Assembly (NCBI GenBank): GCA_002269645.1
Contig: NIVC01004125.1
Location: forward strand, 1 to 59,036
Length of the DNA: 59,036 bases
Reading direction: 5' to 3'
DNA from: Macrostomum lignano
Taxonomy: Eukaryota
Position numbers and translations under genes: made by a program. This document shows positions 5,064 to 50,620 of this stretch, piece by piece. The notes below the pieces were generated by a model. The model was given only the letters and a program-made list of their open reading frames with translations. It searched no databases and was not told where the DNA came from. Each line of letters begins with the position of its first letter. The stretch's first letter is position 1.

Positions 5064-5328
5064 TAGTTGCAACCGACAGTTCAGCCGCAGCTATTGCGCG
5101 GCGCATCTGAAGGTTTCGTACGGCTGTTCAGTCCAAGGACTGGGGGGTCGCCACACACACCCTCAATTTCCCCAGCTAATGCTGGCACAAATGTACAGCT
5201 GGGTGAACTGAAGCAATGCAGAGTTAAGCGTCTTGCTCAAGGACACAAATCGTTCCAGTGGGATCGGGAATCGAACCCCCGACCTTTCAGGTCATGAGTC
5301 GGACGCAATCAACCACGATCCGTACAAT
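5064..5328 (-). mobile_element. tRNA-derived SINE family A (CORE-like central domain)
   Basis: Minus strand has a tRNA-like head with B-box GGTTCGATTCC, then GTGTCCTTGAGCAAGAC...CACCCAGCTGTA. Near-identical copies at 23494-23755 and 36410-36677. The similarity to the CORE-SINE domain is recalled, not searched. Confidence 0.85.
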
Positions 5329-21834: not shown

Positions 21835-31098
<9,264 letters not shown>

Positions 31099-32629: not shown

Positions 32630-34288
32630 CTACAACCGGACGAGAAGCTCCGCTCGAATCTCGGCCCTGCAGATAGGACAGGCTTCCAGGCTGCGGCTGC
32701 AGCGGCTGCAGCAGCAGAAGTGGCCGCAGTGTCGCAGCAGCACGTCAGCCTGCCGGTCGAGGCAAACTTTGCACGAGCGCCAGGCCGGATCGCCGTCCAG
32801 CAGCGCCGGCGGCTCGGTGGGCCAGGCGGACCGAAGCCGGAGCAGCTGCTCAGCCAGGAGCTCCTCTGCCTCCAAGCTTCGGGACAGCCGTTCGGAGCGG
32901 AGCTGCAGCGCAGAGGCGAGCAGCTGCTCAGGGCTGGCGAAATCGTCGCCGGAGAGCGTCAAGCGCAGTTCAATCAGGACTCGAATTTCAGACGATGCTG
33001 AAAGCGCAGCACCGAAAACTCGATGAGCGTCCCGAAAAATCGGCAAGTCGACTCGCGCGCGGACGTCGCGCGGCCCGTTTCTGAAACGCAGTGCCAATTC
33101 TGCACTCGGATCTTCGGTGGCTGCTTGATCCGGTTCGAGCTCGTCTGGCGATCGCGATGAGGATGTCCATGAGGCTGCAGCGGCGCTGGCGGCCGCCTGA
33201 ACGGTTGGCAGCATCGATGCTCGAGCAGCGATGACGAATGCGGCACCGCGGCTCAGAAGCAGGTGAGGACAGCGAGGCGACCAGGTGGCATGCAGCACCC
33301 AGGGATCCTCGTGGGCTGGGCAGTGCGAGAGGCGGAGGCCGCAGCTGAAGCAGGCCAGGCGACACTGCCTAATCAAGAAGAACCCAGCCTCTGCCAGGAC
33401 GTCCCTTGTCGCCAACGGGAGGCTCAAGCAATCTTGCTCGGCTGGAAAGGTGCGCAGGCGAACAGTCAGGCTGAGCAGATCGGGCCAGAGTGGCTTAATG
33501 TGGGTAGCGCAGGCCTCCAGAGTCTCTAAATTGTCCAGAGCTTTTGGCGCCGCTGCGGCTACTGCAACTCTAGCGGAGACTGCCAGTGGTCCGTTTGCCG
33601 TCAGGACAGCTGCGGCCTCTGATGGCCCGAAACCGGTTCGCCTCTGCAGGTCGTGAGTTCGAGTCTCTGCCTTGGAATCCAAGGTACCGCAGGTTCCTTC
33701 GCTACATTGCACCCCCGGTTGGCACCGAGGATCGTCGCTTATTGGTACATTGCCAACATCTAGGTGTAGGACAAACGGACAGGTGCAAAACTGTCTGGCG
33801 TGAGCTGCCATCGGCGATTCGCCAGGCAGCCGGGGTCCCAGCTGTCCGCGGCAAAAAGCGCAGCGGGCGCAACCGCCATCCAAGTGAAAGCCGGCAGCTG
33901 CGAGCTCCGCTGCCTCGGCGTCGGCTGTCCGGAAGGTCGCCAGCCGAGCCGCCTCCGATCGCAGCTCAGCTAGCAGAGGGTCTGCTGACTGTTCGTTGAA
34001 TCGCAGCTGCTGCGGCCTCCTGGGCATCTGGCCTGAGCCACCAGCGTAGTACCGAAGGCAGCGAGCAACCGCAGTCTGGCTGGCAGTGTCGGCTGCAGCT
34101 CGATGCCCCGGCGGCGTCGGCGGCCGCGGCGGAGTTCCAACTTGGATTCCGGCGAGCACCTTGACGGTGAAACTTTCTGCTTCGGCCAGAGCTGCGCGCG
34201 TCTCGCAGCCTTTGACTGCCAGGGCCTCGAGTTCAGCGGCCTGATTGACTGCTCGCCGCTTAAACTCGCTGCTGAGTCCATGCGGCAT
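32630..34288 (-). CDS. Inhibitor-of-apoptosis (IAP/BIRC) protein: 2 BIR + UBA-like + RING, intronless, ~552 aa
   Basis: First ATG at 34288. Two BIR Zn motifs C-x2-C-x16-H-x6-C (CAFC...H...C and CFSC...H...C), each preceded by RLxTF. UBA-like segment (LIELRLTLSGDDFASPEQLLASAL). C-terminal RING CKVCLDRQADVLLRHCGHFCCCSRCSRSLEACPICR. Confidence 0.93.
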   Translation of the reverse strand: MPHGLSSEFKRRAVNQAAELEALAVKGCETRAALAEAESFTVKVLAGIQVGTPPRPPTPPGHRAAADTASQTAVARCLRYYAGGSGQMPRRPQQLRFNEQSADPLLAELRSEAARLATFRTADAEAAELAAAGFHLDGGCARCAFCRGQLGPRLPGESPMAAHARQFCTCPFVLHLDVGNVPISDDPRCQPGVQCSEGTCGTLDSKAETRTHDLQRRTGFGPSEAAAVLTANGPLAVSARVAVAAAAPKALDNLETLEACATHIKPLWPDLLSLTVRLRTFPAEQDCLSLPLATRDVLAEAGFFLIRQCRLACFSCGLRLSHCPAHEDPWVLHATWSPRCPHLLLSRGAAFVIAARASMLPTVQAAASAAAASWTSSSRSPDELEPDQAATEDPSAELALRFRNGPRDVRARVDLPIFRDAHRVFGAALSASSEIRVLIELRLTLSGDDFASPEQLLASALQLRSERLSRSLEAEELLAEQLLRLRSAWPTEPPALLDGDPAWRSCKVCLDRQADVLLRHCGHFCCCSRCSRSLEACPICRAEIRAELLVRL

Positions 34289-35144
34289 TGAGGAAGATCT
34301 GCGGATAAAAGCATTGAGAGGAATACGAGTAGAAGCAAGGAAGTCCAACAGCACAAATATTTCATCCAGGTTACTTGTAGCGAAGTCAAATTTAGACCTT
34401 ATTTAGTTGCTAAAATTAGAGCTTTCGACTTTGAGTTGAAAATCGACTGTACATTGAGGCTACGCTTATGTGTACATTCAGTACTCGCGAAGAGTGTACG
34501 AGTAGTTCATTCCCTGAGGATGCACTGTCTCGTAAGTCGAGCTCATAACCCAATACGTGGCCAAACTTTCGTGGACATTTCATTTTGTTAGCACAATCTT
34601 TTGACCCAAAATAGAATTTGATTGTTTAAACGCAGCGAATACCTTAGTTTCAGAGGGGGACCACAGAATATCAAAAATGATAATATCAAAAAAAATCATT
34701 ACCAAACTGTCTATATTGTACACAATGTGTCGAAATTACTTCTTTAGTACCGCTTTTCCTTAGAATACGGCACGCATTATTCTACTGTAAGTAGACTAAT
34801 TGTAGCAGTAGCGTGCGAACAATTTATTCAGTATTAAAAAGATATGAACGCCAGTACCTGTTGACAATTAATGACTTAGCACCTGTCCCCCAAGGCGCTG
34901 CTACACCCAGATTCAAGAGTGTACAGGAATGGCCTGGCAGAACTGTACAGCCAGTGAGTGTACATTGAAAGCCTGTATTTCTAATGCACGCAGTGCATTG
35001 AAAAGAAACTCTCTCTATCCCCAGCCAGCGATAAAGCCACATTGCATTGCCGGTTTTTTCAGTAGCTGGCGAAGAAAGCGGGAAAGGCCAAGAGAGCCGA
35101 AATAAAACAATAACCGGAATTATTAAAATTGCTGCTCAATCTCT

Positions 35145-38100
35145 ATGCTGCGCATTGGAATTGACGTTGGCGGCACCAACACGGATGCTGCTCTGTTGAA
35201 GGCCGCAGAAAATAGCACCGGCCGGCCCGCTGTGAGTCCTGCTTGTACACTGTCGATTGTTAATGGGGGGGAGATAGAATATGCAGGAACAGACACATTG
35301 TAGTTGTATGCATAGCCACCTAATAGCCTGCTGACGTGTAGATACGAAGGCGAAAAAGTACTTCTAGTCACCTATATTGATGGTCATTAATAGACCTTTG
35401 AACTGGAGGTCTGCCGAACCTTCCTGTGGGGGAAGACACCGAAGACGCCTTGTGACCCGGAGGAATCTGATGAGCTGTTGGGATGTTTTTGGTCGGGTCG
35501 GCGCGCTTCTTCGATAGATGGGTTCAGCTAGAGGTGATGAAGGTTTTCATTTTTTAGGTTGCAAAACTGACACAGCTTGCTCTCCTCGGTCGCTTCCTCG
35601 GAGGAAATTGTGTTTGGTAATGCAGCCATAAACTATGAGAGTCATGGTGAGGACCCGGTTGTGTCCGTTGGTTTTGATTCAAAAGGACCTTCTGGAGACG
35701 GTGCGATGGGTTCGGAACTGCCACTTAATATTTGGCGCTTGTTCACCAGCAAGGTTTTGCTACATGATTGATAACTGAGCGGGCAATCTAGTTTGGGCCA
35801 GGGAAGGAGCTGGAGGCATACCTGAGACGATTGAGGATCTCGAGTCAAGCCAGTTAATTACCCATTAGCCTTGAGTAACCTTGGTCTGCTGGAAAGTCAC
35901 CTTTATCTCTACCTGCGGATAGACGAGTTATCTGATACAGAACCCTAAATACTTGCTGCATAAAAACTGCTCTTTGACTTTGAACAGATCCTGCGCAGTG
36001 TCAAGACGCCAACAACTGACGACGTAACCGGAGGCGTCCGTCAGGCTCTGCGCGAAGTACTGCAAATCGGCTCTCCCGATGAAGTCAAGGAGCCTGTGCA
36101 GCTCGTCAGCATCGGCACCACGCACCTCATCAATGCTGTCTTGCAGCGTCGCGGCCTCGCCAAGATCTGCGTCGTCCGACTGGGCCGGCCAAGCACGGCT
36201 GCTGTACCGCCGTTCTCTGATTGGCCAGAGGACCTGCGGCAGGCGGTCCGTTGCCGCTGGCTGCTCGCTGACGGAGGCTACAATTATGATGGCGAGACTG
36301 TCATCACTGAGCCGAACGAGGCGCAGGTGAGCTGTCATGGAAAATATTCCTCAGCAAAATATGTGAATTTCAGAGTATTCTAAGCACTAAATGAAAATAT
36401 GCATAAATTGGGGTTGTAGCCTAGTGGTTACAGCGTCGGAATCACAACTTGAAGGTCGGGGGTTCCATTCCCGATCCCACTGGAACAATTTGTGTCCTTG
36501 AGCAAGACACTTACTCTGCATTGCTTCAGTTCACCCAGCTGTAAAATGGGTGCCCGCATTAGCTGGGATAATTAAGGGCGTGTTGCGACCTTCCCGTCCT
36601 TGGACTGAACAGCCGTACGCAGCCTTGAGATATGCCGCGCAATAGCTGCGGCTGAGCTGTCAGTTGCATATCTGGCCATTAGTGCAAACTGGCCTCTATC
36701 TCTATATGGTTACAGTAAGTTGTTATGTATTTCTCAACCCTTGCAGATAAAGGAATTCGCCAGGTCAACCAGCGCCGAAACTGGCTGCCGACGATTTGTA
36801 GTTGTGGGAGTCTTCGCTCCGGTGAGGCCAGACCAGGAGCTGCAAGCAGGCCGCTGGATCAGAGAGGCGGTGCCGGGCGCCAGCCTCACCCTGTCCCACC
36901 AGGTGGCTGGCAGTCTGGGTCTACTCGAGCGCGAGAACGCATCAGTGCTGAACGAGTGCCTGAAACCAGCCTGTGCGAGGGCGATTCGCGCATTCCAGGC
37001 TGCCATGACCGAAGTCGGATTGGCCTGTCCGCTGGTGCTGACGCTCAGCGACGGCACGGTGGCTACCGCACCGGACTGCCTCGACCGGCCCGTATCGATG
37101 CTGGGCTCCGGACCAACGAACAGCATGCGCGGGGCCGCATTTCTCACGGGCCTGTCCGATGCTATCGTTGCCGACATTGGAGGCACGACCACGGACATTG
37201 GCCTGCTTGTAGGAGGCTTTCCGAAGCCGGCCGCTGTCCGAGTTCGCATTGCGGGAGTGGCGACCAACTTCACCCAACCTGACGTCACATCGATTGCGCT
37301 CGGTGGAGGGTCCATCGTGACGGCTGGCCTGACTGGTGAATCGCCTTCTGTTGGTCCGCAGTCTGTGGGCTACAAACTCATAAAGGAAGCTCTGGTCTTC
37401 GGAGGGAACATCCCTACCGTAACTGATGCCGCCGTTGCTTCCTCGCCTCACGACGTGCAGGTGGGCGACGCTGATCGCCTCAGAGCTCGGCTCGCTGATG
37501 CAAACGAAGAGTCGCAGTCACTGAGTCGTCTGCTCAGGGCGGCCTACTCGATAGCTCTAACTAGCTTGGAGGCCGCTGTAGACGCCGCCCGTGTATCGAG
37601 TGCTCAGATGCCCGTCGTGCTGGTTGGAGGTGGCGCGGCTCTATTCTCGGGCGCCCGAAGCCTGGCCGGAATGCCGGTGCAAGTTCCCGCCGACGCCGGA
37701 GTGGCGAACGCGCTGGGCGCAGGTCTCTGCCAAGTAAGTGGCAACGTTGAGGCTACGTTGAATCTGGCGGATCCAGCCGAGCGAAAAGCCCGCCTAGACG
37801 AAGTCAAGGCTGCCGCTGTTGACGCAGCCGTTTCAAGAGGATCGGTGCGCTCTTCGACGCAACTAAAGGAACTACACGAGGTCCAGCTGCCCTATGTGCC
37901 AGGTGGTGCTTGTCGTGTCTCAGCCAGGGCTATTGGGGAGCTTGATATCTCTGCTGCTGCTCGTCTGAGCTTGCAGGTAAATGCGCATGCTGACGGTGCT
38001 GATGCCTCAGTTTTATCGGAGGAGGAGAGCGGTACCGCTGCCAAACAAGCTTCACGCAGTACCTGTGTGCCTGTGCCAGCACAGCGCGAGTTTGATGACC

Positions 38101-39320
38101 AAGGCGATTGGCTTCTCAGTGACTACGACACTCACTGTCTGAGCGTGGGCGCCGGGCTTATAGGTTGCGGGGGAGGCGGCAGCCCCTACGTCGGCCGGCT
38201 GATGCTCAACTGTCTGATGGAGAACGGTCATCGGCCTCGCATAGTGAAACTCGACCGAATGCTTGAGCTCAACGGAGCGGAAGGCCTGGTTGCCCTCCCT
38301 GGCTTTGTGGGCTCGCCGACAGTCTGCAATGAAAAAATCACTTCCGGTTTAGAGACAGCAACAGCCATTCGGCTCGTCCACCTGGCTGACGAGCTGCGTC
38401 GGCAGAAACCTGAGCAGCAGCTGCACTTTGTCGAAAGCTGCGATGCACTCGGTGGCGGTGAGGTCAAATGGGATGAAAAAATTGTCGGTGTAGCCTCCTT
38501 GGAGATCGGGGGATTAAACAGCATTGAGCCTCTGGTGGTAGCGGCTAAACTTGGTCTGCCCGTACTCGACATGGACGGCATGGGCCGGGCATTCCCGGAG
38601 CTGCAGATGGTTCTGCCGATGATTGGCGGTTGTCCAGCGGCCCCGGCTGCAATTGGCGATGAGTTCGAGCGAGGTGCCGTCATTGTCGAGTGTGATAGCG
38701 CCAAGGAGCTGGAGACGCACTTCCGCAGTGTCTGCGTCCAGCGTGGCTGTTCGGTTGGTATTGCGATGCCTCCACTGAAGCTGCAGCAGTGCAGAGAGCA
38801 CCTGCTGCCTGGCAGCTACACCAGAGCCTGGCGTCTCGGCGACGGCATCCTGCGAGCTCGTGCGGCCAAGACGGATCCAGTGGAAACCGCGCGCAGTTTG
38901 CTGAACGGTCGCGTGCTGTTGTCGCGCGGCAAGATTGCGGACGTCCGTCGAGTTACCAGCGGGGGATTCGCACGCGGCAGCCTGATTGTAGTTGAGGACA
39001 GGCGCGGAGAAAGCGAAGAGAGCGGCCTCGATGTGGAGTTCCAGAACGAGTACCTGCTCGTTAAGCGTCTGGGCGCGCCGGAAACTGAGGCACTGGCCTG
39101 CACACCGGACCTCATCATAGTGATGGACGCAGACTCCGGCGAGCCGGTAACGACAGAGGAGCTGCGCTACGGCCTCCGGGTAGCCGTGCTGGCTGCGCCG
39201 TGCCACCCGCGAATGGCGACGCCAGCCGCGCTCGCTGCCGTCGGGCCGCAGGCGTTCGGCTTCGACGGAATCAAGTACCGACCCTGCGCCGAGTATCGGC
39301 TCGATGCTGACGAAGCGTGA
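35145..39320 (+). CDS. Hydantoinase/oxoprolinase A-type domain fused to a C-terminal DUF917 domain, 999 aa
   Basis: Exons 35145-35231, 35988-36326, 36747-39320, all phase 0, no frameshift. Motifs GIDVGGTNTDA, VSIGTTHLINAV, GSGPTNSMRGA, DIGGTTTDIG, SIALGGGS and ANALGA mark hydantoinase A. GAGLIGCGGGGSPY, EIGGLNS, DMDGMGRAFPELQM, GKIADV, FQNEYL and PDLI...TTEELRYG mark DUF917. Confidence 0.9.
36410..36677 (+). mobile_element. SINE family A, intronic
   Basis: A-box TAGCCTAGTGG, B-box-like GGTTCCATTCC and CORE-like GTGTCCTTGAGCAAGACACTT...CACCCAGCTGTAAAATGGG; in intron 2 of the hydantoinase gene. Confidence 0.85.
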
Positions 39321-39732: not shown

Positions 39733-42700
39733 TCAGACGAGGCTGAAGCCCTCCGTCTCGTCGATTGCCAAGCAGCTTCTGGCGCAGGTCTCCCTGTCCG
39801 GGTAGCGCGGCAGGTCGAGCATGTTGTAGCAGGTGTGCGCCACCGGCAGACACCTGGGGCTGCAGTGGACCACCTGGATGCGCAGGCGAACTGCTGACAT
39901 TCCCTGCGTAGCGAGTAGGTTTTGGTTGGTAATCCTGGTTGAAGCAATGCACTGCTCTCAGGCTTCGGAAGCGCTCTGATGTACCAGTGGCCCAGGCTCG
40001 ATTCCAAGTGCAGTCACATTAATTTGGGGCTAAATTGGAATCTCGGCTTGGCTCTGCTTGTGAAATTAACGCCATTGAGGGCCAACCCCAAAGCACACTG
40101 AAGTGTACATGCCTAACGATAAATAAAGTTAGGGCCGCTGTACACTCCTGTGTGAGTGTGTGCCTGCGCGTATGACTGCGTACGTATCCGCGCGCTTGTG
40201 TGCCTGCTCAGGGGAGTCGGCGGAATGGCAGCAATGCCTCTTGCCGGTTGTGTGACAATGTCGCATAAAGTGCACCAGGGTGCACACAGCCCCTGCCTCC
40301 AATTAAAAAATTTTCCGAGACTTCATAAGCGCGAGCTCGTTATACTTATCGCCACTAAAGTAGGGACTCACCTGCACCGGCACGCGGTCGCTTCCCGTGA
40401 GGAAGCGCAAGAAGCGCCGCTTATTATCCTCGTCCAGATCCTGGTGAAACACCGACCAGAAGTTGGCGATGAGCTGCTGGTAATCCGGGCTGGGGTTCAC
40501 GTAATGGCCCCCTGCTCCAGCTGGTCCCAGTCGAAGCAGCCGCTCTCGCCATTGATGATCGCCTGCAGCTCCTGCGGCTCCAGCAGCGGCAGCACCGGGC
40601 TGCCGCAGGCGCGCTCGAATCCTGCCTGAAAAGCATCAAAGGCGTCGCGACAGCTGCGGTTCAGCACGAAGTCCACATAGGCGGACACGTAGGACTCTCG
40701 GTTGCCAAGGGTGACGCGGTCCTCCGGACTAGCCGACAGCGGCACGCGCTGCACGTGGTCGAACATTTTGGTCTCGATCTCGAAGTTCAACTCGAGTTCT
40801 TCCACTGAGTTCGCCGTCTCCGCATCAAGCAGCGACTGCAGGCTGTTCCCCACGGTCGGGTCGAGCTCTTTGAGGTCGTCAAGAGCAACCGGCTGTCGCA
40901 GAAGCTTCTTGAAGAGAGCCATCGGGAACGGCACAGCGGCCAGGATGCTGTTGTAGATTGCCAGGCCCAGCAGTGTTCCGATGAGGCTGAAGTTCTCGGG
41001 GCACTCCAGCGTGCTGTGGTTGAACCAGACAAGATTCGAGTCAAAGCAAGTGAACATGCCGTACACGGGGTCAAGGATCTGGCGAAAGATCAACAGAAAG
41101 AATTCTTTTGTTAGGCCACCCTCGTCAACGGCTTCTTCGCCCTTGAAGGTGATCCGAAGCGGCTTCTTCAGCTCGGCCGGGTGGCAGCTGCTGAGGCTGA
41201 CTACTGCATCCTGGATCAAGGCCTGCCGCGCCACCCGCAGCACTAGGAAGGGGCTACGCATGTCAAAGATTGCGCCGAACGTAAAACCCTGAAATAGGTT
41301 AAACATCATCGCCTCGCGAAAGGCCTGCTCCATCTGCATCCGAGCGTCAACCTTCAGCAGCTCCATCTTGGCGTGACTGTCGAACACGAATGGATATTTG
41401 AGAAAGCTAAACTGGTTCCGGTTTTCCGTCCAGGCGCGGTAGTCCTTCTCCAGGGGCACCCGGTCGCGAATTTCCGCGAGGTGAAACGAAGATGCGGGCA
41501 GGCGATCGCGTCGGTCACTGTTGAGGGCGTGCAATCGCTTCAGAAAGTCCAGGCACGGTCGGAGACGCCGGATCCGCTGCTCGTCTGCGTCGACTTTTGC
41601 AGCCTCATTTGCCTCACCATTGGCGTCGCAGTCGCTGGACGCGAGCAGGTGCTGAGCAGCCCGGATCAGGCAGCGCACCAGGCGGGCAAAGTGGCGAAGC
41701 CGGAGCTCCATGATCCAACTCAGCAGGACAGTCATCAGAGGTCGCGGTAGTCGGAGCACCAGCTCTGCCAAGGCCGGCTGCAGCGGTCCCGGTGACTCGA
41801 ACTCCGGACTGAGCGGCAGAAGCAGCAACAGACGAAGGCATTCGGCGTCTGCCAGGTGGGCTTCTTCGCGTTCTGTCAAGTCCGTTAGAAGCTCGGTCTG
41901 CGCCGCCAGCAGCTCCTGGCGTCTCTCCGGGTTACTGACCGCAGCTGCGCCCAGCCGTTTCTGCAGAAACTCGGCCGCTGCGTCGAGGTCGAGGCCATGC
42001 CAGCCCGGCCGAGGATTCTCGTGTTCAATATCGGGGAGCAGGAAGGCGCGGGCGTAGGCAGCGGGACACGCGGCGATGGCCAAACAGCCCGGCCAGTCAC
42101 CGTCGGGATCGCACGAGTCGAGCGACAAAAGGCCCTCCGGGATGGATGACTTTGCGGCCATCGGAGGCCCGCCGACTCGTAAGAATGCACGCCACCGCCA
42201 GCGGAAACATCAACGTCACCTGCACCGCCTGGGCCCAGGGTCAACGGCCAGGGTTTATTGCGACGCTAGCTGAGGGACCAACAGTACCAAATGCGTAAAC
42301 CCGGCCTCCTTGACAGCTGGCGTACGTGACTGAGGTGCCGCAGTCGGCGGTTACCACCCGAGAGCCCATCAGCTCCGCAACCTGTCGCGGTAGCGACTCG
42401 CTGGAGTTGCTTCCGTGGCCCAGCTGCCGAGGTCGCCGGCGCCAAATGTAAAGAGGCCGCCATCAGCAGTGACGGCAGCGGTGTGCTCGTGCCCGCAGGC
42501 AATCCGACGCACCCGTCGGTTGCGCAGGGCGGAGCACTCGAGCGGCCGGGTAGCAAAAGCGAGCAAAAGGCCCTCCGGGATGGATACTTTAAGAATCGCA
42601 CGGCCCGCCGACTCCAGCGGAAAAGAATGCACGCCCACCGCCAGCGCAAACATCAACGTCACCTCAACACCGCCAGGGTGGGCCCAGGGTCAACGGCCAG

Positions 42701-43888
42701 GGTTTATTGCGACGCTAGCTGAGGGACCAACAGTACCAAATGCGTAAACCCGGCCTCCTTGACAGCTGGCGTACGTGACTGAGGTGCCGCAGTCGGCGGT
42801 TACCACCCGAGAGCCCATCAGCTCCGCAACCTGTCGCGGTAGCGACTCGCTGGAGTTGCTTCCGTGGCCCAGCTGCCCGAGGTCGCCGGCGCCAAATGTA
42901 AAGAGGCCGCCATCAGCAGTGACGGCAGCGGTGTGCTCGTGCCCGCAGGCAATCCGACGCACCCGTCGGTTGCGCAGGGCGGAGCACTCGACTGGTAGCG
43001 GCCGGGTAGCATTTCCGTCCTCGTGCCGCATCCGAGCTGGCCGCGGTCATTGGAGCCCCAGGCCAGAAGGACAGCGCTGTGCGACAATACAAAGCTGTGC
43101 CGCCCACCGCAAGCGATCTGGCGGACTGGCAGACCGCCAAGGCGGCGCACTGGCGCCAGTCCGGAGCCGGTCTGACAGTGGCCGCGGCCCAGCTGGCCAT
43201 GCGAGTTGTCGCCGAACGCAAATACCTGGTGGTCTGCGGTGAGCACCAAGCTGTGGCCGCCTCCAGCAGCCACCAAAACCGCCCGGTGACCCATCAGGGG
43301 GGTCACCGGCCCTACTCTGAGCGAGCCACCGCCGCCTGACCCATCGTCCGCTCTGGGGCCCAGTTGGCCGCAGGAGTTGCTGCCCCACGCTAAGACCTGG
43401 CCTTCCGAAGTCAGCGCCAGCGAGTGCCGTCCACCGGCCTCCAGCTGCGTCACTCGACTCGACGTTGCCAGCGACTTGGCGAGACCCGGCACTGGCGCGA
43501 ACTCTTCGTCCTCGCCGTCGCCACTGCGGGACAGTGCGCTGCCGTCAGATGTCAAGAGCAGACAGTGACTGTCACCAGCTGCCACTGTGAGAACAGCAGC
43601 CGCCAATGTCGGTTTCAGGGCCACTTCGGTTGGCAGAGCCTGCCACGAGGTACGCGAGTCGTTAGCCGGGGACTTGGAGAGCGGCTCGCCAACCATCAGA
43701 AGCTTCGGTGTAGAATGCTGAGGTTCGCTTGTCCTGATGCTCTGCTTGGGAGCTGGCGGTTTTTTCCGGGTTGGCTGCTGATCAGAGAGTTTGCCACCAC
43801 TCTGCTGCGTTGACTTTGGCAGTAGTTTCCGCGAATCAGTTTGCTGTAGCAGTGGCTGCTTCGGGCGAGCCTTCTCGGCGCTGTCCAT
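39733..43888 (-). CDS. HERC4: Small HERC-type E3 ubiquitin ligase (RCC1 repeats + HECT), HERC3/4-like
   Basis: Exons ~43888-40372 and 39903-39733 (phase 0, PVQ|GMS). RCC1 repeats (AAGDSHCL, AGGRHSL, WGSNSCGQLG, FGDNSHGQLG). HECT motifs YPFVFD, LKKPLRITFKGEEAVDEGGLTKEFF, FLRFLTGSDRVP and catalytic AHTCYN. Several small frameshifts and a ~450-bp internal duplication. The symbol names the closest vertebrate type, not proven orthology. Confidence 0.88.
39971..40310 (+). mobile_element. SINE family B (slightly 5'-truncated), in last HERC intron
   Basis: Matches 18764-19065 and 52591-52950; ends in an A-rich tail AATTAAAAAA. Confidence 0.85.
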
Positions 43889-44629
43889 AGCTTGGATGTT
43901 GGATGCACTTATAAAATCACCGCGACCCGACGGCGGTCTTTCCAGCTTGTCCCCCTGTCGATTCAGGTAAGCCCTACTCAGGCTCTAGCTTGTGTTAGCA
44001 TAAAAAACTTTTCTCGCTTTATACTGTGGACTGGCTGTGAAGCTGTACGAGTCGTTATAGCAGCCATTTTTGTTGAACGGCTCTCTGTACTCTCAGGCAG
44101 CGCGCGGCCGCTCAACTCTGCCCTCGGCGCGCCCATCCCCCTTCCCCGTGCAGCCCCACCCCAACCCCCGATAGCCCGGCGCACGGGGCGAGAATTTCAT
44201 AACCGCGCGCGCTCCCCGACGTTGCCCGGACAGACACACTCACCTAAAACTATGCTGTAGACAAAGTACACGCTAGATAAAGATAGTAAGCACTGACTTC
44301 TGCGCGCAGTTACTACCCCATTACTTGCCACCAAGCAAGTACACGAACTCAACTGCAGGACAGGGAGGTTGCAATTTTCCAAGACCTCCTGCACCCAATT
44401 CCTCTGCCTTTTCATGCCATCAAGGACGCTTGACTACAAATCTGTTCCGAGAGGTAATGCGCTTCTAACTAACAGGCCTGCTCAAGAAACAAGCTTAACA
44501 TTCTCACGTAGATGCAATAAGCAAACTGCAGGTACTGTAAATGCATGTACGTGCGTTTCAAACTCCTAAGCATAAATATGATGCAGTACAGATTCATCGA
44601 GTACATACACGTACGACTGTTCAGTGAGC

Positions 44630-44695
44630 TAATGCTGGCACCCATTTTACAGCTGGGTGAACTGTAGCAATGCAGAGTTAAATGTCTTGCTCAGG
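44630..44695 (-). mobile_element. SINE family A internal fragment
   Basis: GCTAATGCTGGCACCCATTTTACAGCTGGGTGAACTG...GTCTTGCTCA matches copies at 5064 and 23494. Confidence 0.75.
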
Positions 44696-45175: not shown

Positions 45176-48100
45176 CTACTCAATCAGCTTGGACTTCAGG
45201 AAGTCAACGAAGTCGTCAATAAGCGACGGCCAGGCGCCTGAAATGTCGGATTGCAGAAATGTACTTTTATTTATCTGCGCTTTTGCCTGTACCACAGGTA
45301 CTAGAATAACTAGATGGGGCACTCGGCGCATTTGCGACCCCCCCGTCCTTGGACTGAAGAGCCGTACGCAGCCTTCAGATACACATCTGCCCAGTGGGGC
45401 AGGTGTAATCAATAATAATAATAAACATTGTGCCACATTGCTCAATAGCCCGCAGCCTACCATTGGATCATAGTCGGCCAGGTTGTCCGGGTTGCTCACA
45501 AAGTCGAAAAATAAATTCCAGGTGTCGCGAGAGACTCCGCGCACCTTGGCCTCGCGCAGGAAACGAAACCAGGACTCGAGCAGCTGACCGAAGGCCCGCC
45601 ATTCAGCAGCAGGTTCCAGTAGGGGATGGCAGTCTCCACAGCTGCGGGGTGGCGAATTCGTCAGATGAAACTACTAACAGTAGAATAAAATCGGCGAATC
45701 GGTGAGTGGGGATAGGGATAGGGATCCCGGGAGTCGGGATTTCGGAAGTCAGGATAAGGACTCGGGGGTCGGGATAGGGATCTCGGTAGTCGGGATAGGG
45801 ATTTCGAGAGTCGGACCTCGGGAGTCGGGACCTAGGAGTCGGGACCTCGGATTCGGGATCTCATAAGTCGATATCCGGATCGGGACCTTTGGAAGTCGGA
45901 TCTCCGGAGTTTGGGATCTCCGGAGTCGGATCGGGATCTAGGGAGTCGGGATAGGGATTTCGAGAGTCGGGACCCGGGAGTCGGGTCGATATCCGGATTC
46001 GGGACCTTTGGAAGTCGGGATCTCCAGAGTCGGGATCTCCAGATTCGGATCGGGACCTCGGGAGTCAGGATGGATCTCAGGAGTCGGGATCGGGATTTTG
46101 GGAGTCGGGATCGGGATCTCGAGAGTCGGAATCGGGACCTCGGGAGTCGGGATCGGGACTTCGGAAGTCGGGATCTCCAGAGTCGGGATCGGGACCTCGG
46201 AGTCAGGATCCGGATCTCAGGAGTCGGGATCGGGATTTTGGGAGTCGGATCGGGATCTCGAGAGTCGGAATCGGGACCTCGGGAGTCGGGGTCACAAAAC
46301 TCGCGGATAGGGACCTGGAGTCGGATCGGGATCTCGAGAGTGCGGGATCTCGGGAGTTGGGATTGGTTTATCAAAGATCCGAATTTTCGTCGCAGACTTA
46401 CGCAGCACTTTGGAGTCCCGCGACTCCCTAGCGAAGTCAAACGTGAAGGCGTGCAGGTCGCGCAGCTGCCCGACGTCCTGGGCCAGAGCCCGCTCGTCTG
46501 GGCCAGCCGGGAGCGCAGCTTGTCGAGGCTGTCGGCGCCCAGACGGCCGAGGCCGGTGACGAATTCGGCTCTGGAGAACTCGCCCTGAACACCGGCCTGC
46601 AGCTTCCAGGCCAGCACGAGGGCGGTGAGGGACACCGGGTCGATGCGCAGATCGTCTAACAGGCGACAAACTCCGGTAGGGTTGATGCGGTCGGGGTCAT
46701 CCTGAGAGTAAAGGCAGCGGTGCACAATACTGCTCATAAGCCTTGGTATACGGTTCGGGAACCTTAGTTGAATTTGGCGTTCCCAGGCAAACCGCCTTTG
46801 AGAGTCATTCACAGAACATGTGGGCTGTCGTGCGATTCACAGCCATGAAGGCCAGTTCCAAAGGCACAGAGAGTCAGGACCGCTGTACACCCTGTGTGAG
46901 CGTGTGAGTGCGTGCCTGCGTACAGTATAGGCTCAGAAGTCAGTGGAATGGGCAGAATTGCCTCAGCGCTGGTTGTGTTGGCTCAGAAGTCAGTGGAATG
47001 GGCAGAATTGCCTCAGCGCTGGTTGTGTTGGCTCAGAAGTCAGTGGAATGGGCAGAATTGCCTCAGCGCTGGTTGTGTTGGCTCAGAAGTCAGTGGAATG
47101 GGCAGAATTGCCTCAGCGCTGGTTGTGTTGGCTCAGAAGTCAGTGGAATGGGCAGAATTGCCTCAGCGCTGGTTGTGTTGGCTCAGAAGTCAGTGGAATG
47201 GGCAGAATTGCCTCAGCGCTGGTTGTGTTGGCTCAGAAGTCAGTGGAATGGGCAGAATTGCCTCAGCGCTGGTTGTGTTGGCTCAGAAGTCAGTGGAATG
47301 GGCAGAATTGCCTCAGCGCTGGTTGTGTTGGCTCAGGAGTCAGTGGAATGGGCAGAATTGCCTCAGCGCTGGTTGTGTTGGCTCAGAAGTCAGTGGAATG
47401 GGCAGAATTGCCTCAGCGCTGGTTGTGTTGGCTCAGAAGTCAGTGGAATGGGCAGAATTGCCTCAGCGCTGGTTGTGTTGGCTCAGAAGTCAGTGGAATG
47501 GGCAGAATTGCCTCAGCGCTGGTTGTGTTGGCTCAGGAGTCAGTGGAATGGGCAGAATTGCCTCAGCGCTGGTTGTGTTGGCTCAGAAGTCAGTGGAATG
47601 GGCAGAATTGCCTCAGCGCTGGTTGTGTTGGCTCAGAAGTCAGTGGAATGGGCAGAATTGCCTCAGCGCTGGTTGTGTTGGCTCAGAAGTCAGTGGAATG
47701 GGCAGAATTGCCTCAGCGCTGGTTGTGTTGGCTCAGAAGTCAGTGGAATGGGCAGAATTGCCTCAGCGCTGGTTGTGTTGGCTCAGAAGTCAGTGGAATG
47801 GGCAGAATTGCCTCAGCGCTGGTTGTGTTGGCTCAGAAGTCAGTGGAATGGGCAGAATTGCCTCAGCGCTGGTTGTGTTGGCTCAGAAGTCAGTGGAATG
47901 GGCAGAATTGCCTCAGCGCTGGTTGTGTTGGCTCAGAAGTCAGTGAAATGGGCAGAATTGCCTCAGCGCTGGTTGTGTTGGCTCAGAAGTCAGTGGAATG
48001 GGCAGAATTGCCTCAGCGCTGGTTGTGTTGGCTCAGGAGTCAGTGGAATGGGCAGAATTGCCTCAGCGCTGGTTGTGTTGGCTCAGAAGTCAGTGGAATG

Positions 48101-50620
48101 GGCAGAATTGCCTCAGCGCTGGTTGTGTTGGCTCAGAAGTCAGTGAAATGGGCAGAATTGCCTCAGCGCTGGTTGTGTTGGCTCAGGAGTCAGTGGAATG
48201 GGCAGAATTGCCTCAGCGCTGGTTGTGTTGGCTCAGAAGTCAGTGGAATGGGCAGAATTGCCTCAGCGCTGGTTGTGTTGGCTCAGGAGTCAGTGGAATG
48301 GGCAGAATTGCCTCAGCGCTGGTTGTGTTGGCTCAGAAGTCAGTGGAATGGGCAGAATTGCCTCAGCGCTGGTTGTGTTGGCTCAGAAGTCAGTGGAATG
48401 GGCAGAATTGCCTCAGCGCTGGTTGTGTTGGCTCAGGAGTCAGTGGAATGGGCAGAATTGCCTCAGCGCTGGTTGTGTTGGCTCAGAAGTCAGTGGAATG
48501 GGCAGAATTGCCTCAGCGCTGGTTGTGTTGGCTCAGAAGTCAGTGGAATGGGCAGAATTGCCTCAGCGCTGGTTGTGTTGGCTCAGAAGTCAGTGGAATG
48601 GGCAGAATTGCCTCAGCGCTGGTTGTGTTGGCTCAGGAGTCAGTGGAATGGGCAGAATTGCCTCAGCGCTGGTTGTGTTGGCTCAGAAGTCAGTGAAATG
48701 GGCAGAATTGCCTCAGCGCTGGTTGTGTTGGCTCAGGAGTCAGTGGAATGGGCAGAATTGCCTCAGCGCTGGTTGTGTTGGCTCAGAAGTCAGTGGAATG
48801 GGCAGAATTGCCTCAGCGCTGGTTGTGTTGGCTCAGAAGTCAGTGGAATGGGCAGAATTGCCTCACCGCTGGTTGTGTTGGCTCAGAAGTCAGTGGAATG
48901 GGCAGAATTGCCTCAGCGCTGGTTGTGTTGGCTCAGAAGTCAGTGGAATGGGCAGAATTGCCTCAGCGCTGGTTGTGTTGGCTCAGAAGTCAGTGGAATG
49001 GGCAGAAATGCCTCAGCGCTGGTTGTGTTGGCTCAGGAGTCAGTGGAATGGGCAGAATTGCCTCAGCGCTGGTTGTGTTGGCTCAGGAGTCAGTGGAATG
49101 GGCAGAATTGCCTCAGCGCTGGTTGTGTTGGCTCAGAAGTCAGTGGAATGGGCAGAATTGCCTCAGCGCTGGTTGTGTTGGCTCAGAAGTCAGTGGAATG
49201 GGCAGAATTGCCTCACCGCTGGTTGTGTTGGCTCAGAAGTCAGTGGAATGGGCAGAATTGCCTCAGCGCTGGTTGTGTTGGCTCAGAAGTCAGTGGAATG
49301 GGCAGAATTGCCTCAGCGCTGGTTGTGTTGGCTCAGGAGTCAGTGGAATGGGCAGAATTGCCTCAGCGCTGGTTGTGTTGGCTCAGGAGTCAGTGGAATG
49401 GGCAGAATTGCCTCAGCGCTGGTTGTGTTGGCTCAGAAGTCAGTGGAATGGGCAGAATTGCCTCAGAAGGCGTTGCGTCAGGGCGGCCGCACCTATCCAG
49501 CAATTAGTAATATTATTACGAGGGGTGTCCCCGAAAAGTTCTGACACTTTTAATTCCAGAGCAAAAACAGTCGCAACTGCAAGCACAACTTTGGTGTCAT
49601 TTTAAAGCGGCACATCTCTGCTTTCCACTGAATTAAGTCGCGTGTATTTTGGTCATTTCATTCAAAAGTTACGTGTCTTAGAGTAAAAGTTAAAAAATAT
49701 AAAAGTCGATTTTTTGTGTTCAAAGAAACGAATTGTAGTCATTCATCATTATCATCCTTCAAGGCAGCCTTGTCAACGTAGTCTCCACCTGTAGCAACAC
49801 ACTTTTCACATCGCTTGAGCATTCCGTGCCTTCGGCCTTTCAAATGCACACTCATGATGGTGTCAAAAATCACAAAAATCAAAACACTTGACCTTTGCAA
49901 GGTGCAAAACAGTGAGATTTGCTTACAAGTGACGGAGTGTATAAAATACTCAACACAGAAATGGTGGACGGTAAGAGAGGGATGCACTGTAAATTAGAGC
50001 CGTTTTGTGTACGCTCGTAAACGATTGTACTTGCGTGCTGCAAACAAGATCCATAAAAAAGCTATGTACTTCACCTTTTACTCCTGTAAGACTATCTGCA
50101 GCATTTTGATGGTTTTTCACACACAATTTTTGAATGAAATGACCAATATACACGCGACTTAATTCATGACATGGGCACCCCTAGTATATTATCTTTAATG
50201 TATTATTCTATTCTTTTTCATTTATATGATCCTACTGCTCAACTTCCCTCAACCGAATGCATTCAACGACACCACAGTGATCGCTAGCCAATGGCAGGCC
50301 TCCCGCACCTGACTAACAACATCACCCCCAATTAGGCAGCTTCTGAGTCCTGGTTCTCAGGGCGGGAGGGATTAAGATCGCTACGTCCCGTGGTTGAGTC
50401 TCACCTGAGACCGGTAGGAGTTGAACAGCGCGGCCACCTTTCTGGTGTCAACAGACAGCCGCTCGTCATATTTGGCGGGGCTGCTGTAATAATCGTCCAC
50501 TGCTGCATCCAGGCGCCAGGCATTCTGGCTGAGGCACTGCAGCGCCACCGGCTCCTGCGCCTCTGTGCACTGCACGAACCGCTGCACGAGCTCACGCTGT
50601 TCTCGCCGTAGTCGGTTCAT
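45176..50620 (-). CDS. DCUN1D1: DCN1-like protein (NEDD8 E3; UBA-like + PONY/cullin-binding domain)
   Basis: Exons 50620-50405, 46701-46402, 45641-45461, ~45238-45176. Motifs MNRLRREQRELVQRFVQCT...WRLDAAVDDYY, LDDLRIDP...VLAWKLQA..QGEFSRAEF, FTFDFA, TAIPYWNLLL, SRDTWNLFFDF and YD..GAWPSLIDDFV. Three apparent 1-nt indels. Confidence 0.92.
45330..45392 (+). mobile_element. SINE family A 3' fragment, intronic
   Basis: TTGCGACCCCCCGTCCTTGGACTGAAGAGCCGTACGCAGCCTT matches the 3' part of 36410-36677. Confidence 0.7.
45700..46360. repeat. Degenerate GGGAGTCGGGATC-type repeat with a ~140-bp higher-order duplication, DCN1 intron 2
   Basis: Mixed GAGTCGG/GATCGG/GACCTCG units; 46021-46150 recurs at ~46170-46290. 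Confidence 0.88.
46850..46930 (+). mobile_element. SINE family B fragment directly upstream of the 50-bp satellite
   Basis: AAAGGCACAG...AGTCAGGACCGCTGTACACCCTGTGTGAG...GTGCCTGCGTAC matches family B (AGTCAGGGCCGCTGTACACTCCTATGTGAGTGTGTGC). Confidence 0.7.
46931..49466. repeat. 50-bp tandem satellite (GCTCAGAAGTCAGTGGAATGGGCAGAATTGCCTCAGCGCTGGTTGTGTTG)n, ~51 copies, DCN1 intron 1
   Basis: Near-identical head-to-tail units without spacers, with a few recurrent single-base variants. Confidence 0.98.
49519..50184 (-). mobile_element. Non-autonomous Tc1/mariner (mariner-type) element with transposase C-terminal remnant
   Basis: TA|CGAGGGGTGTCC left end and GGGCACCCCTAG|TA right end. A 38-bp inverted repeat with 1 mismatch at ~49631-49668 and ~50128-50165. 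The minus strand encodes KRCEKCVATGGDYVDK, typical of mariner transposase C-termini. Confidence 0.85.

Follow-up and report, generated by a model that had tools for sequence, protein, structure and literature searches.

The window analysed here is a 59,036-nucleotide (nt) stretch of Macrostomum lignano DNA (contig NIVC01004125.1, assembly GCA_002269645.1), and our subject is a spliced gene on its forward strand (35145-39320) that encodes a hydantoinase-A-like ATPase fused to a DUF917 module. Joining the plus-strand segments 35145-35231, 35988-36326 and 36747-39320 afforded 3000 nt in frame with one terminal stop and a product of 999 amino acids (aa), and both introns showed GT..AG borders (GTGAGT...AACAG and GTGAGC...TTGCAG, respectively). 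The translation matches BOX15_Mlig028193g1 of M. lignano with 100% identity over 100% of the length, and the fusion gene is already in public databases as an annotated protein. A Pfam profile search revealed four domains, each far above its gathering score: Hydant_A_N (aa 3-183, 96.5 bits vs. a cutoff of 25.2), Hydantoinase_A (aa 204-472, 93.4 vs. 22.9), S-Me-THD_N (PF06032, formerly DUF917; aa 603-785, 132.1 vs. 27) and S-Me-THD_C (PF20906; aa 794-988, 186.8 vs. 27), which places the protein in both the HyuA-type ASKHA ATPase superfamily and the DUF917/S-Me-THD-like family. A Hydant_A_C domain was not detected by Pfam in the 999-aa protein. Hydantoinase_B, for which we took as criterion PF02538 with its Asp-His-Asp-His metal site, the place of hydrolysis, was found neither in the protein nor among the 148 open reading frames (ORFs) of at least 97 aa in the window. 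These results bear out an earlier note on this DNA, made from the letters alone, which had claimed an intact 999-aa frame with two canonical introns, a hydantoinase-A/DUF917 fusion to be examined by a profile scan, and the lack of a hydantoinase-B partner in the window; a C-terminal half without a DUF917 match, which that note had named beforehand as refuting its proposal, is contradicted by the matches to both PF06032 and PF20906.

The coordinates of all features of the gene are collected in Table 1. At the end of exon 1 (35205-35231), directly before the intron-1 donor, the protein carries a 7-residue insertion, NSTGRPA, relative to 23 homologues, which is consistent with the public annotation. 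For intron 1, no second copy was found within the window by blastn.

Table 1 Features of the fusion gene and of the repeat in its second intron, in window coordinates
Feature	Position	Strand	Basis or remark
Exon 1, aa 1-29	35145-35231	+	start codon; N-terminus aligns with 23 homologues
Phosphate-1 motif DVGGTNTD (exon 1)	35163-35186	+	ASKHA motif, aa 7-14
Intron 1, 756 nt, phase 0	35232-35987	+	GT..AG; position absent in amphioxus/Lingula
Exon 2, aa 30-142, part of Hydant_A_N	35988-36326	+	translation, Pfam
Intron 2, 420 nt, phase 0	36327-36746	+	GT..AG; position absent in amphioxus/Lingula
SINE-like dispersed repeat in intron 2	~36412-36675	+	tRNA-like head from 36410, box A/B-like motifs; ~260 bp
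Exon 3, aa 143-999, with stop codon 39318-39320	36747-39320	+	translation
Remainder of short hydantoinase-A-like ATPase module, to ~aa 553	36747-37979	+	
Phosphate-2 motif DIGGTTTD, aa 285-292	37173-37196	+	
VGPQSVGYKLIKEALVFGG at the site of GxxPGP of canonical HyuA proteins	37350-37406	+	
Disordered linker between the modules, aa 554-582	37980-38066	+	pLDDT <50; variable in alignment
DUF917/S-Me-THD-like module, aa 603-988	38127-39284	+	
Gly loop GAGLIGCGGGG (DUF917 module)	38148-38180	+	
DMDGMGRAFP (DUF917 module)	38568-38597	+	
FQNE (DUF917 module)	39039-39050	+	

Analysis of the N-terminal half revealed that the phosphate-1 (DxGGTxTD) and phosphate-2 (D[VI]GGT) motifs, as defined in PMC8453981, are intact in the flatworm protein and invariant across 24 fusions, and that Lys35 is likewise conserved. 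The matching sequences in the PDB were 7hk5, 6yra and 5l9w, while Foldseek returned 9h03, 5svc, 5l9w and 6yra, that is, the ATP-binding subunits of N-methylhydantoinase, of acetone and acetophenone carboxylases and of caprolactamase. With N-methylhydantoinase (7hk5/9h03), OPLAH, the caprolactamase CapAB (6yra) and the carboxylases (5svc, 5l9w), the flatworm half has in common the ASKHA fold with its inserted domain and the phosphate-1 and phosphate-2 motifs. The role of the A subunit in HyuA/HyuB enzymes is limited to ATP-dependent activation of the substrate; the activated lactim then moves to the B subunit, and hydrolysis takes place at the metal site of the latter (PMC8453981). In contrast to these enzymes, the flatworm protein has no hydantoinase-B module and instead carries DUF917, whose fold is unrelated, and its ATPase is shorter (~550 vs. 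~690 aa), without a detected Hydant_A_C domain and with the GxxPGP motif replaced. This replacement, VGPxSVG(Y/F)xLxxEALVFGG, was found in 54 of 54 eukaryotic fusions and in all 37 DUF917-paired prokaryotic proteins compared, whereas the one canonical HyuA sampled has GxxPGP.

For the DUF917 half, structure prediction gave a model with a predicted local distance difference test score (pLDDT) of 86.8 and a predicted template modelling score (pTM) of 0.88, whose only fold match in Foldseek was 2o3i (template modelling score 0.68-0.76, E 6e-19). Searches of the PDB by sequence and fold gave 2o3i alone for this half and revealed neither a desulfurase structure nor any resemblance to HyuB, and the predicted structure indicates that the half does not adopt a HyuB fold. 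The sole significant structural match, 2o3i, is CV_3147 of Chromobacterium violaceum, a structural-genomics DUF917 structure with no assigned function that is 22% identical to the flatworm half; its partial sequence, as scanned, reached 50-54 bits on the desulfurase equivalog models described below, which is below their cutoffs. The full-length model reached a pTM of 0.85, and the linker was its only long stretch with a pLDDT below 50. As only this linker is disordered, the scores suggest that the two modules are confidently docked, and the model thus implies a two-module body.

Separate genes for the same two modules proved to be widespread in prokaryotes. A scan of one genome per species yielded at least 583 loci, of which 80 were retrieved for analysis, and 3136 representative prokaryotic DUF917 proteins were recovered at E<=1e-3. 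At 78 of the 80 loci, from bacteria and a few archaea, a short hydantoinase-A-like gene (~515 aa) adjoins one to several DUF917 genes (~360 aa), and none of the 80 loci contained a fused ORF. The commonest arrangement, a single ATPase gene with two DUF917 genes after it, was present at 21 loci, while many others within the set (L001-L080) carried two or more DUF917 paralogues or a second complete pair; this multiplicity hints at hetero-oligomeric DUF917 assemblies. At one locus (L001), a canonical 677-aa HyuA with GAFPGP directly follows the short pair. Representative pairs, annotated as 'hydantoinase/oxoprolinase family protein' and 'DUF917 domain-containing protein', occur in Rhizobium rhizogenes (L052) and Devosia (L017) as well as on the Lactiplantibacillus plantarum plasmid CP140148.1 and the Parageobacillus plasmid NC_015665.1, and each of their modules is ~34-44% identical to its flatworm counterpart. 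They resemble the flatworm protein in the VGPxSVGYxLxxEALVFGG segment and in the residues E728, N733, D752, D780, E798, R877, Q908, Y950 and R953 (flatworm numbering). Unlike the single flatworm chain with its linker, they consist of separate genes, often with two to three DUF917 paralogues per ATPase gene, in importer operons.

Among 143 flanking ORFs, 33 encode an ATP-binding cassette (ABC) ATPase domain, 27 of these with an Opp/Dpp-type C-terminal region, and six encode NCS1 'cytosine/purine/allantoin' permeases. A minimal cassette comprising a PucR regulator, a cytosine permease, DUF917 and a hydantoinase is found on annotated plasmids of Lactiplantibacillus and Parageobacillus, and in Ensifer the pair lies inside an ABC-transporter operon. 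In Clostridioides difficile, CDR20291_1615-1617 (permease, DUF917, hydantoinase) are listed as changing together in one transcriptome table (PMC12915319). We conclude that the prokaryotic pairs are import-and-degrade cassettes; the literature searched names no substrate for them.

The earlier note had further proposed that the flatworm fusion acts on thiohydantoins in ergothioneine catabolism. Its statement that DUF917 proteins serve as desulfurases in ergothioneine breakdown is substantiated by two NCBIfam equivalogs within the family, NF058529 (thiohydantoin desulfurase) and NF058532 (S-methyl thiohydantoin desulfurase), and by a cluster on a Deinococcus plasmid. This Ert-type cluster (L088; Deinococcus sp. 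KNUC1210, plasmid NZ_CP092189.1, 179454-186504), which bears generic annotation only, was used as a control and comprises amidohydrolase-family genes, ErtE, a urocanase-like gene, DUF917 and an aromatic ammonia-lyase, with no hydantoinase-A gene among them. Its Zn hydrolase passes the ErtE equivalog (562.6 bits vs. a cutoff of 520), its urocanase-like gene reaches 767 bits on the thiourocanate-hydratase model, slightly below the equivalog cutoff, and its DUF917 protein reaches 394.9 bits on NF058529, itself slightly below the cutoff of 440. In comparison, the flatworm half scored 48.3 bits against 440 for NF058529 and 57.7 bits against 450 for NF058532 and thus falls below both equivalog cutoffs. 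The other eukaryotic fusions (amphioxus, fungal, algal and Willaertia; 42-100 bits) and the bacterial HyuA-paired DUF917s (67-132 bits) likewise gave low values on the desulfurase models. Identity between the flatworm half and the control desulfurase amounts to 27%.

Comparison of 16 HyuA-fused or HyuA-paired DUF917s with the one control desulfurase revealed 35 columns that are invariant in the HyuA-linked proteins, 21 of which are common to the control, including the GGGG loop, E671, R756, A757, P759, R802, N909, E910, P929 and D930. The remaining 14 differ, and nine of these changes (HyuA-linked to control) affect polar residues: E728Q, N733S, D752A, D780G, E798S, R877L, Q908M, Y950G and R953E. 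All nine HyuA-linked states are present in the flatworm protein. On these alignments, the HyuA-linked DUF917s form a separate clade with its own conserved polar residues, to which the flatworm half belongs, and the latter is, as judged from sequence, only a distant relative of the ergothioneine-breakdown desulfurases. The desulfurases of the ErtC type (NF058529) and of NF058532 have the Pfam pair PF06032 and PF20906 and the GGGG loop in common with the flatworm protein; they differ from it in having no ATPase partner and in being clustered with lyase, hydratase, amidohydrolase and ErtE genes. Near the bacterial genes most closely related to the fusion, urocanase and aromatic-lyase families are outside the 25 commonest families of the 143 flanking ORFs, and none of these 25 corresponds to an ergothionase-like lyase, thiourocanate hydratase, amidohydrolase or ErtE, all of which are represented in the control cluster.

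These data bear directly on a thiohydantoin route in which DUF917 would remove sulfur from (S-methyl-)ergothioneine intermediates and the hydantoinase-A half would open the ring. Such a route would fit a family that contains thiohydantoin and S-methyl-thiohydantoin desulfurases, as reflected in the Pfam name S-Me-THD-like, and the 21 of 35 clade-invariant columns common to the control leave room for a related core chemistry. Moreover, marine invertebrates encounter thiohistidine derivatives in their diet. We nevertheless consider this route improbable, as the HyuA-linked DUF917s reach only 42-132 bits compared with 394.9 bits for the DUF917 of the Ert cluster, differ from the desulfurase in the nine invariant polar residues and lack urocanase and aromatic-lyase families among the 25 commonest in the flanks of their closest bacterial relatives, while the Ert cluster opens the ring by means of amidohydrolase-family and ErtE enzymes. 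The accompanying idea that the fusion couples desulfuration with ring opening is not supported either: HyuA only activates its substrate, hydrolysis belongs to the metal-containing B subunit (PMC8453981), and a hydantoinase-A half alone would therefore supply no ring opening; a lone HyuA subunit is not known to hydrolyse anything. The thiohydantoin/ergothioneine specificity proposed by the earlier note thus finds no support apart from distant kinship within the family, and HyuA-linked DUF917s should not inherit an ergothioneine assignment.

Full-length fusions with 36-43% identity over 98-100% of the query were detected in many animal phyla, green algae and Balamuthia, with more distant ones in Pelomyxa, Willaertia, Anaeramoeba and the basidiomycete Ramaria, so that the fusion-bearing groups span Metazoa, fungi, algae, Amoebozoa, Heterolobosea and Anaeramoeba. 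The animal carriers include amphioxus, corals and other cnidarians, echinoderms, hemichordates, molluscs, a brachiopod, a nemertean, a priapulid, a sea spider and placozoans, and all best named matches of the flatworm protein are metazoan. Marine and freshwater invertebrates thus commonly possess this architecture, which the earlier note had regarded as known mainly from bacteria and fungi. The proteins of Branchiostoma (LOC109483812), Stylophora (LOC111345029), Lingula (LOC106170126), Trichoplax ('hydantoin utilization protein A'), Coccomyxa, Balamuthia, Willaertia and Ramaria have the four-domain architecture of the flatworm protein, a length of ~950-1070 aa and all motifs. No vertebrate, insect or nematode protein was found among the best 120 matches. 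The earlier note's statement that vertebrates lack this ability therefore holds for the gene, as far as these 120 matches reach, while the catabolic ability itself is presumptive.

Comparison of gene structures revealed 17 introns in amphioxus (Branchiostoma belcheri) and 18 in Lingula anatina, of which at least 14 lie in identical alignment columns distributed across both halves, and since these positions are common to both animals, the fused gene is older than the protostome-deuterostome split. The Lingula gene extends over ~71 kb and harbors a G-protein-coupled receptor gene nested in one intron. In contrast to both, Macrostomum has two introns (after aa 29 and aa 142), which match none of the amphioxus and Lingula positions, besides its 7-aa insertion, and we conclude that the ancestral introns were lost from the flatworm copy, which carries two of its own. 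For phylogeny, neighbour-joining (NJ) bootstraps were computed on the concatenated halves of 35 eukaryotes and 14 bacterial pairs (879 columns, 300 replicates). The split between eukaryotes and prokaryotes was recovered in 231 of 300 replicates, which constitutes moderate rather than strong evidence for a separate eukaryotic clade. Across the NJ bootstraps, Macrostomum was placed within a prokaryote-free clade of at least ten taxa in 81-93% of cases.

The phylogeny called for in the earlier note, carried out here by NJ, speaks together with the wide eukaryotic occurrence of fusions and the common amphioxus and Lingula introns against the horizontal transfer suggested there. A recent transfer into Macrostomum from a bacterium or another eukaryote, with the two introns gained later, would account for an intron complement of merely two, neither at an ancestral metazoan position, for the long flatworm branch with its unstable placement among eukaryotes, and for a mean identity to metazoans (43.8%) that is barely above that to other eukaryotes (40.9%) and bacteria (39.7%). 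The low number of introns can, however, be put down to heavy loss in flatworms, which is an ordinary explanation. The fused architecture with its linker is specific to eukaryotes and was found at 0 of 80 prokaryotic loci, the metazoan best matches and the bootstrap values for the prokaryote-free clade and the metazoan grouping (53%) point in the same direction, and the gene has host-typical neighbours and a host-typical content of guanine and cytosine (GC), with a host SINE-like repeat in an intron. On this evidence a transfer of either origin appears highly improbable; recent transfer from a bacterium in particular is very unlikely. Recent bacterial transfer or contamination was also rejected as a candidate on the basis of the architecture, the neighbours, the introns and the SINE-like repeat. 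The claim of the earlier note that this is a genuine nuclear gene and not bacterial contamination is corroborated by the introns, the repeat, the eukaryotic neighbours and the architecture.

As the best joint explanation of the data, which we hold to be moderately probable, the flatworm gene would encode, as one eukaryotic polypeptide, an enzyme that is widespread in prokaryotes in two-component form and composed of a short HyuA-like ASKHA ATPase and DUF917, and the fusion would be old and vertically inherited in eukaryotes. By analogy with the HyuA/HyuB enzymes, we infer a mechanism in which Mg-ATP is bound by the N-terminal module and used to phosphorylate a small cyclic amide or ureide in its lactim or enol form, with hydantoins, lactams and pyrimidine-like rings as candidate substrate classes. 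The docked DUF917 module would then carry out a hydrolytic displacement at the activated carbon and in this way stand in for the metal-containing hydantoinase-B subunit of N-methylhydantoinase, 5-oxoprolinase and caprolactamase. DUF917 desulfurases would perform the same formal displacement at C2 of a thiohydantoin or S-methyl-thiohydantoin, and we propose that, with sulfide or methanethiol as a leaving group that is good without activation, they can dispense with ATP. In the HyuA-linked clade, phosphate would serve as the leaving group instead, and the extra acidic and arginine residues of this clade would suit a Mg-phosphate intermediate. Physiologically, the enzyme may serve to salvage or degrade a heterocycle that is imported or taken up with the diet.

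Several observations weigh against this explanation. On the functional side, the adenosine motif GxxPGP is absent, the aligned flatworm segment being GYKLIKEAL; no characterised member of the HyuA-linked DUF917 clade was found in the literature, so that the mechanism is drawn by analogy; and the docking of the modules is known from the scores of the model alone and not from its coordinates. With respect to ancestry, the introns at non-ancestral positions give the flatworm's own copy no link to the metazoan lineage, a grouping of Macrostomum with metazoans appeared in only 160 of 300 bootstraps of the concatenated halves (53%), and NJ trees of single halves were weak, with 32% support for the split between eukaryotes and prokaryotes.

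Two other functions were considered for the ATPase half. It could use ATP to activate, chaperone or gate a DUF917 module whose own chemistry needs no ATP, a mode of action found in other ASKHA proteins such as dehydratase activators and the mutase reactivase GlmL. This would agree with weak sub-threshold matches to MutL/GlmL, BcrAD_BadFG and acyl-CoA dehydratase activase, with Foldseek matches to activators and reactivating factors, and with the apparent partner independence of the characterised DUF917 desulfurases. However, these Foldseek matches rank far below those of the HyuA type, and the activator-type similarity reflects only the common ASKHA fold, whereas by far the best matches in sequence and structure are substrate-activating subunits of hydantoinase, carboxylase and lactamase. 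In addition, nothing suggests a radical, metal-cluster or cofactor state in DUF917 that would need reactivation. We therefore regard an activase as unlikely.

The second possibility is a non-hydrolytic ATP-dependent reaction, either a carboxylation or an ATP-driven ring closure or ligation. The ATP subunits of acetone and acetophenone carboxylases are among the closest structures and NCBIfam matches, and the superfamily comprises both hydrolases and carboxylases (PMC8453981). Yet equivalents of the carboxylase beta or gamma subunits are missing, the bacterial context consists of import cassettes, which are typical of catabolism, and the known DUF917 chemistry, according to the NCBIfam names, is hydrolytic. 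A reaction of this type is consequently quite unlikely, and substrate activation followed by hydrolysis on DUF917 remains the preferred assignment.

The repeat in intron 2, which the earlier note had read as a short interspersed nuclear element (SINE), is best described as SINE-like: it has dispersed copies and a tRNA-like head, while neither ARAGORN nor Rfam called a transfer RNA (tRNA) in it. Near-full copies were located by blastn on the minus strand at 5068-5316 (86% identity) and 23496-23753 (84%), and fragments at 44627-44693 and 45332-45381. Immediately upstream of the fusion gene, on the opposite strand, a single 574-aa ORF (32630-34354, minus) contains BIR domains and a C-terminal RING finger and represents an IAP-like (inhibitor of apoptosis) gene. 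Downstream, a HECT ORF (40497-42161) and an RCC1-repeat ORF (42818-43888) lie on the minus strand and probably belong as exons to a single gene for a HERC-like E3 ligase. Matches of other single ORFs to Cullin_binding (DCUN1-like), GIY-YIG, DUF3645 and vitellogenin open-beta-sheet domains suggest more genes or a mobile element in the window.

The rest of the window is marked by repeats and shifts in composition. A near-perfect (TAGA)n microsatellite of ~404 copies with 99% matches (29077-30694) is responsible for an AT-rich, strongly skewed stretch with spurious long ORFs. A 50-bp minisatellite (46930-49466; ~50.7 copies, 98% identity) leaves all three plus-strand frames open and thereby gives rise to meaningless Pfam matches (PsbM, Antiholin, DUF6903), and a tandem array of 119-139-bp units lies close to it (45867-46349). 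Between 50000 and 57000, a long AT-rich stretch with a GC content of 0.30-0.36 is devoid of long ORFs, compared with 0.55-0.64 in the gene-rich part of the window.

The flatworm gene is one ordinary member of a large, old and widespread family, and its value lies in the hypothesis for this family and not in the locus. Thousands of prokaryotic pairs and the fusions across eukaryotic supergroups belong to it, and no experimentally assigned function was found for them. The eukaryotic fusion serves as Rosetta-stone evidence that the ATPase and DUF917 act as one machine, while the contrast with a true ergothioneine cluster marks the residues that separate the ATP-linked clade, providing enzymologists with both a hypothesis and a list of residues. 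For annotators, it is a warning that the renamed Pfam family offers no ground for labels such as 'thiohydantoin desulfurase' or 'ergothioneine catabolism' in these proteins. More tentatively, and again by analogy, short-HyuA/DUF917 proteins could constitute a distinct class of ATP-dependent ring-opening hydrolases in which DUF917 displaces phosphate from an ATP-activated imidate, and which invertebrates, algae, fungi and amoebae have kept; we put this forward as a possibility whose odds are somewhat unfavourable. If true, it would point to a catabolism or salvage of small heterocycles that was lost in vertebrates and apparently in insects and nematodes, and even a marine metabolite derived from thiohistidine or of the hydantoin type would be conceivable as the substrate.

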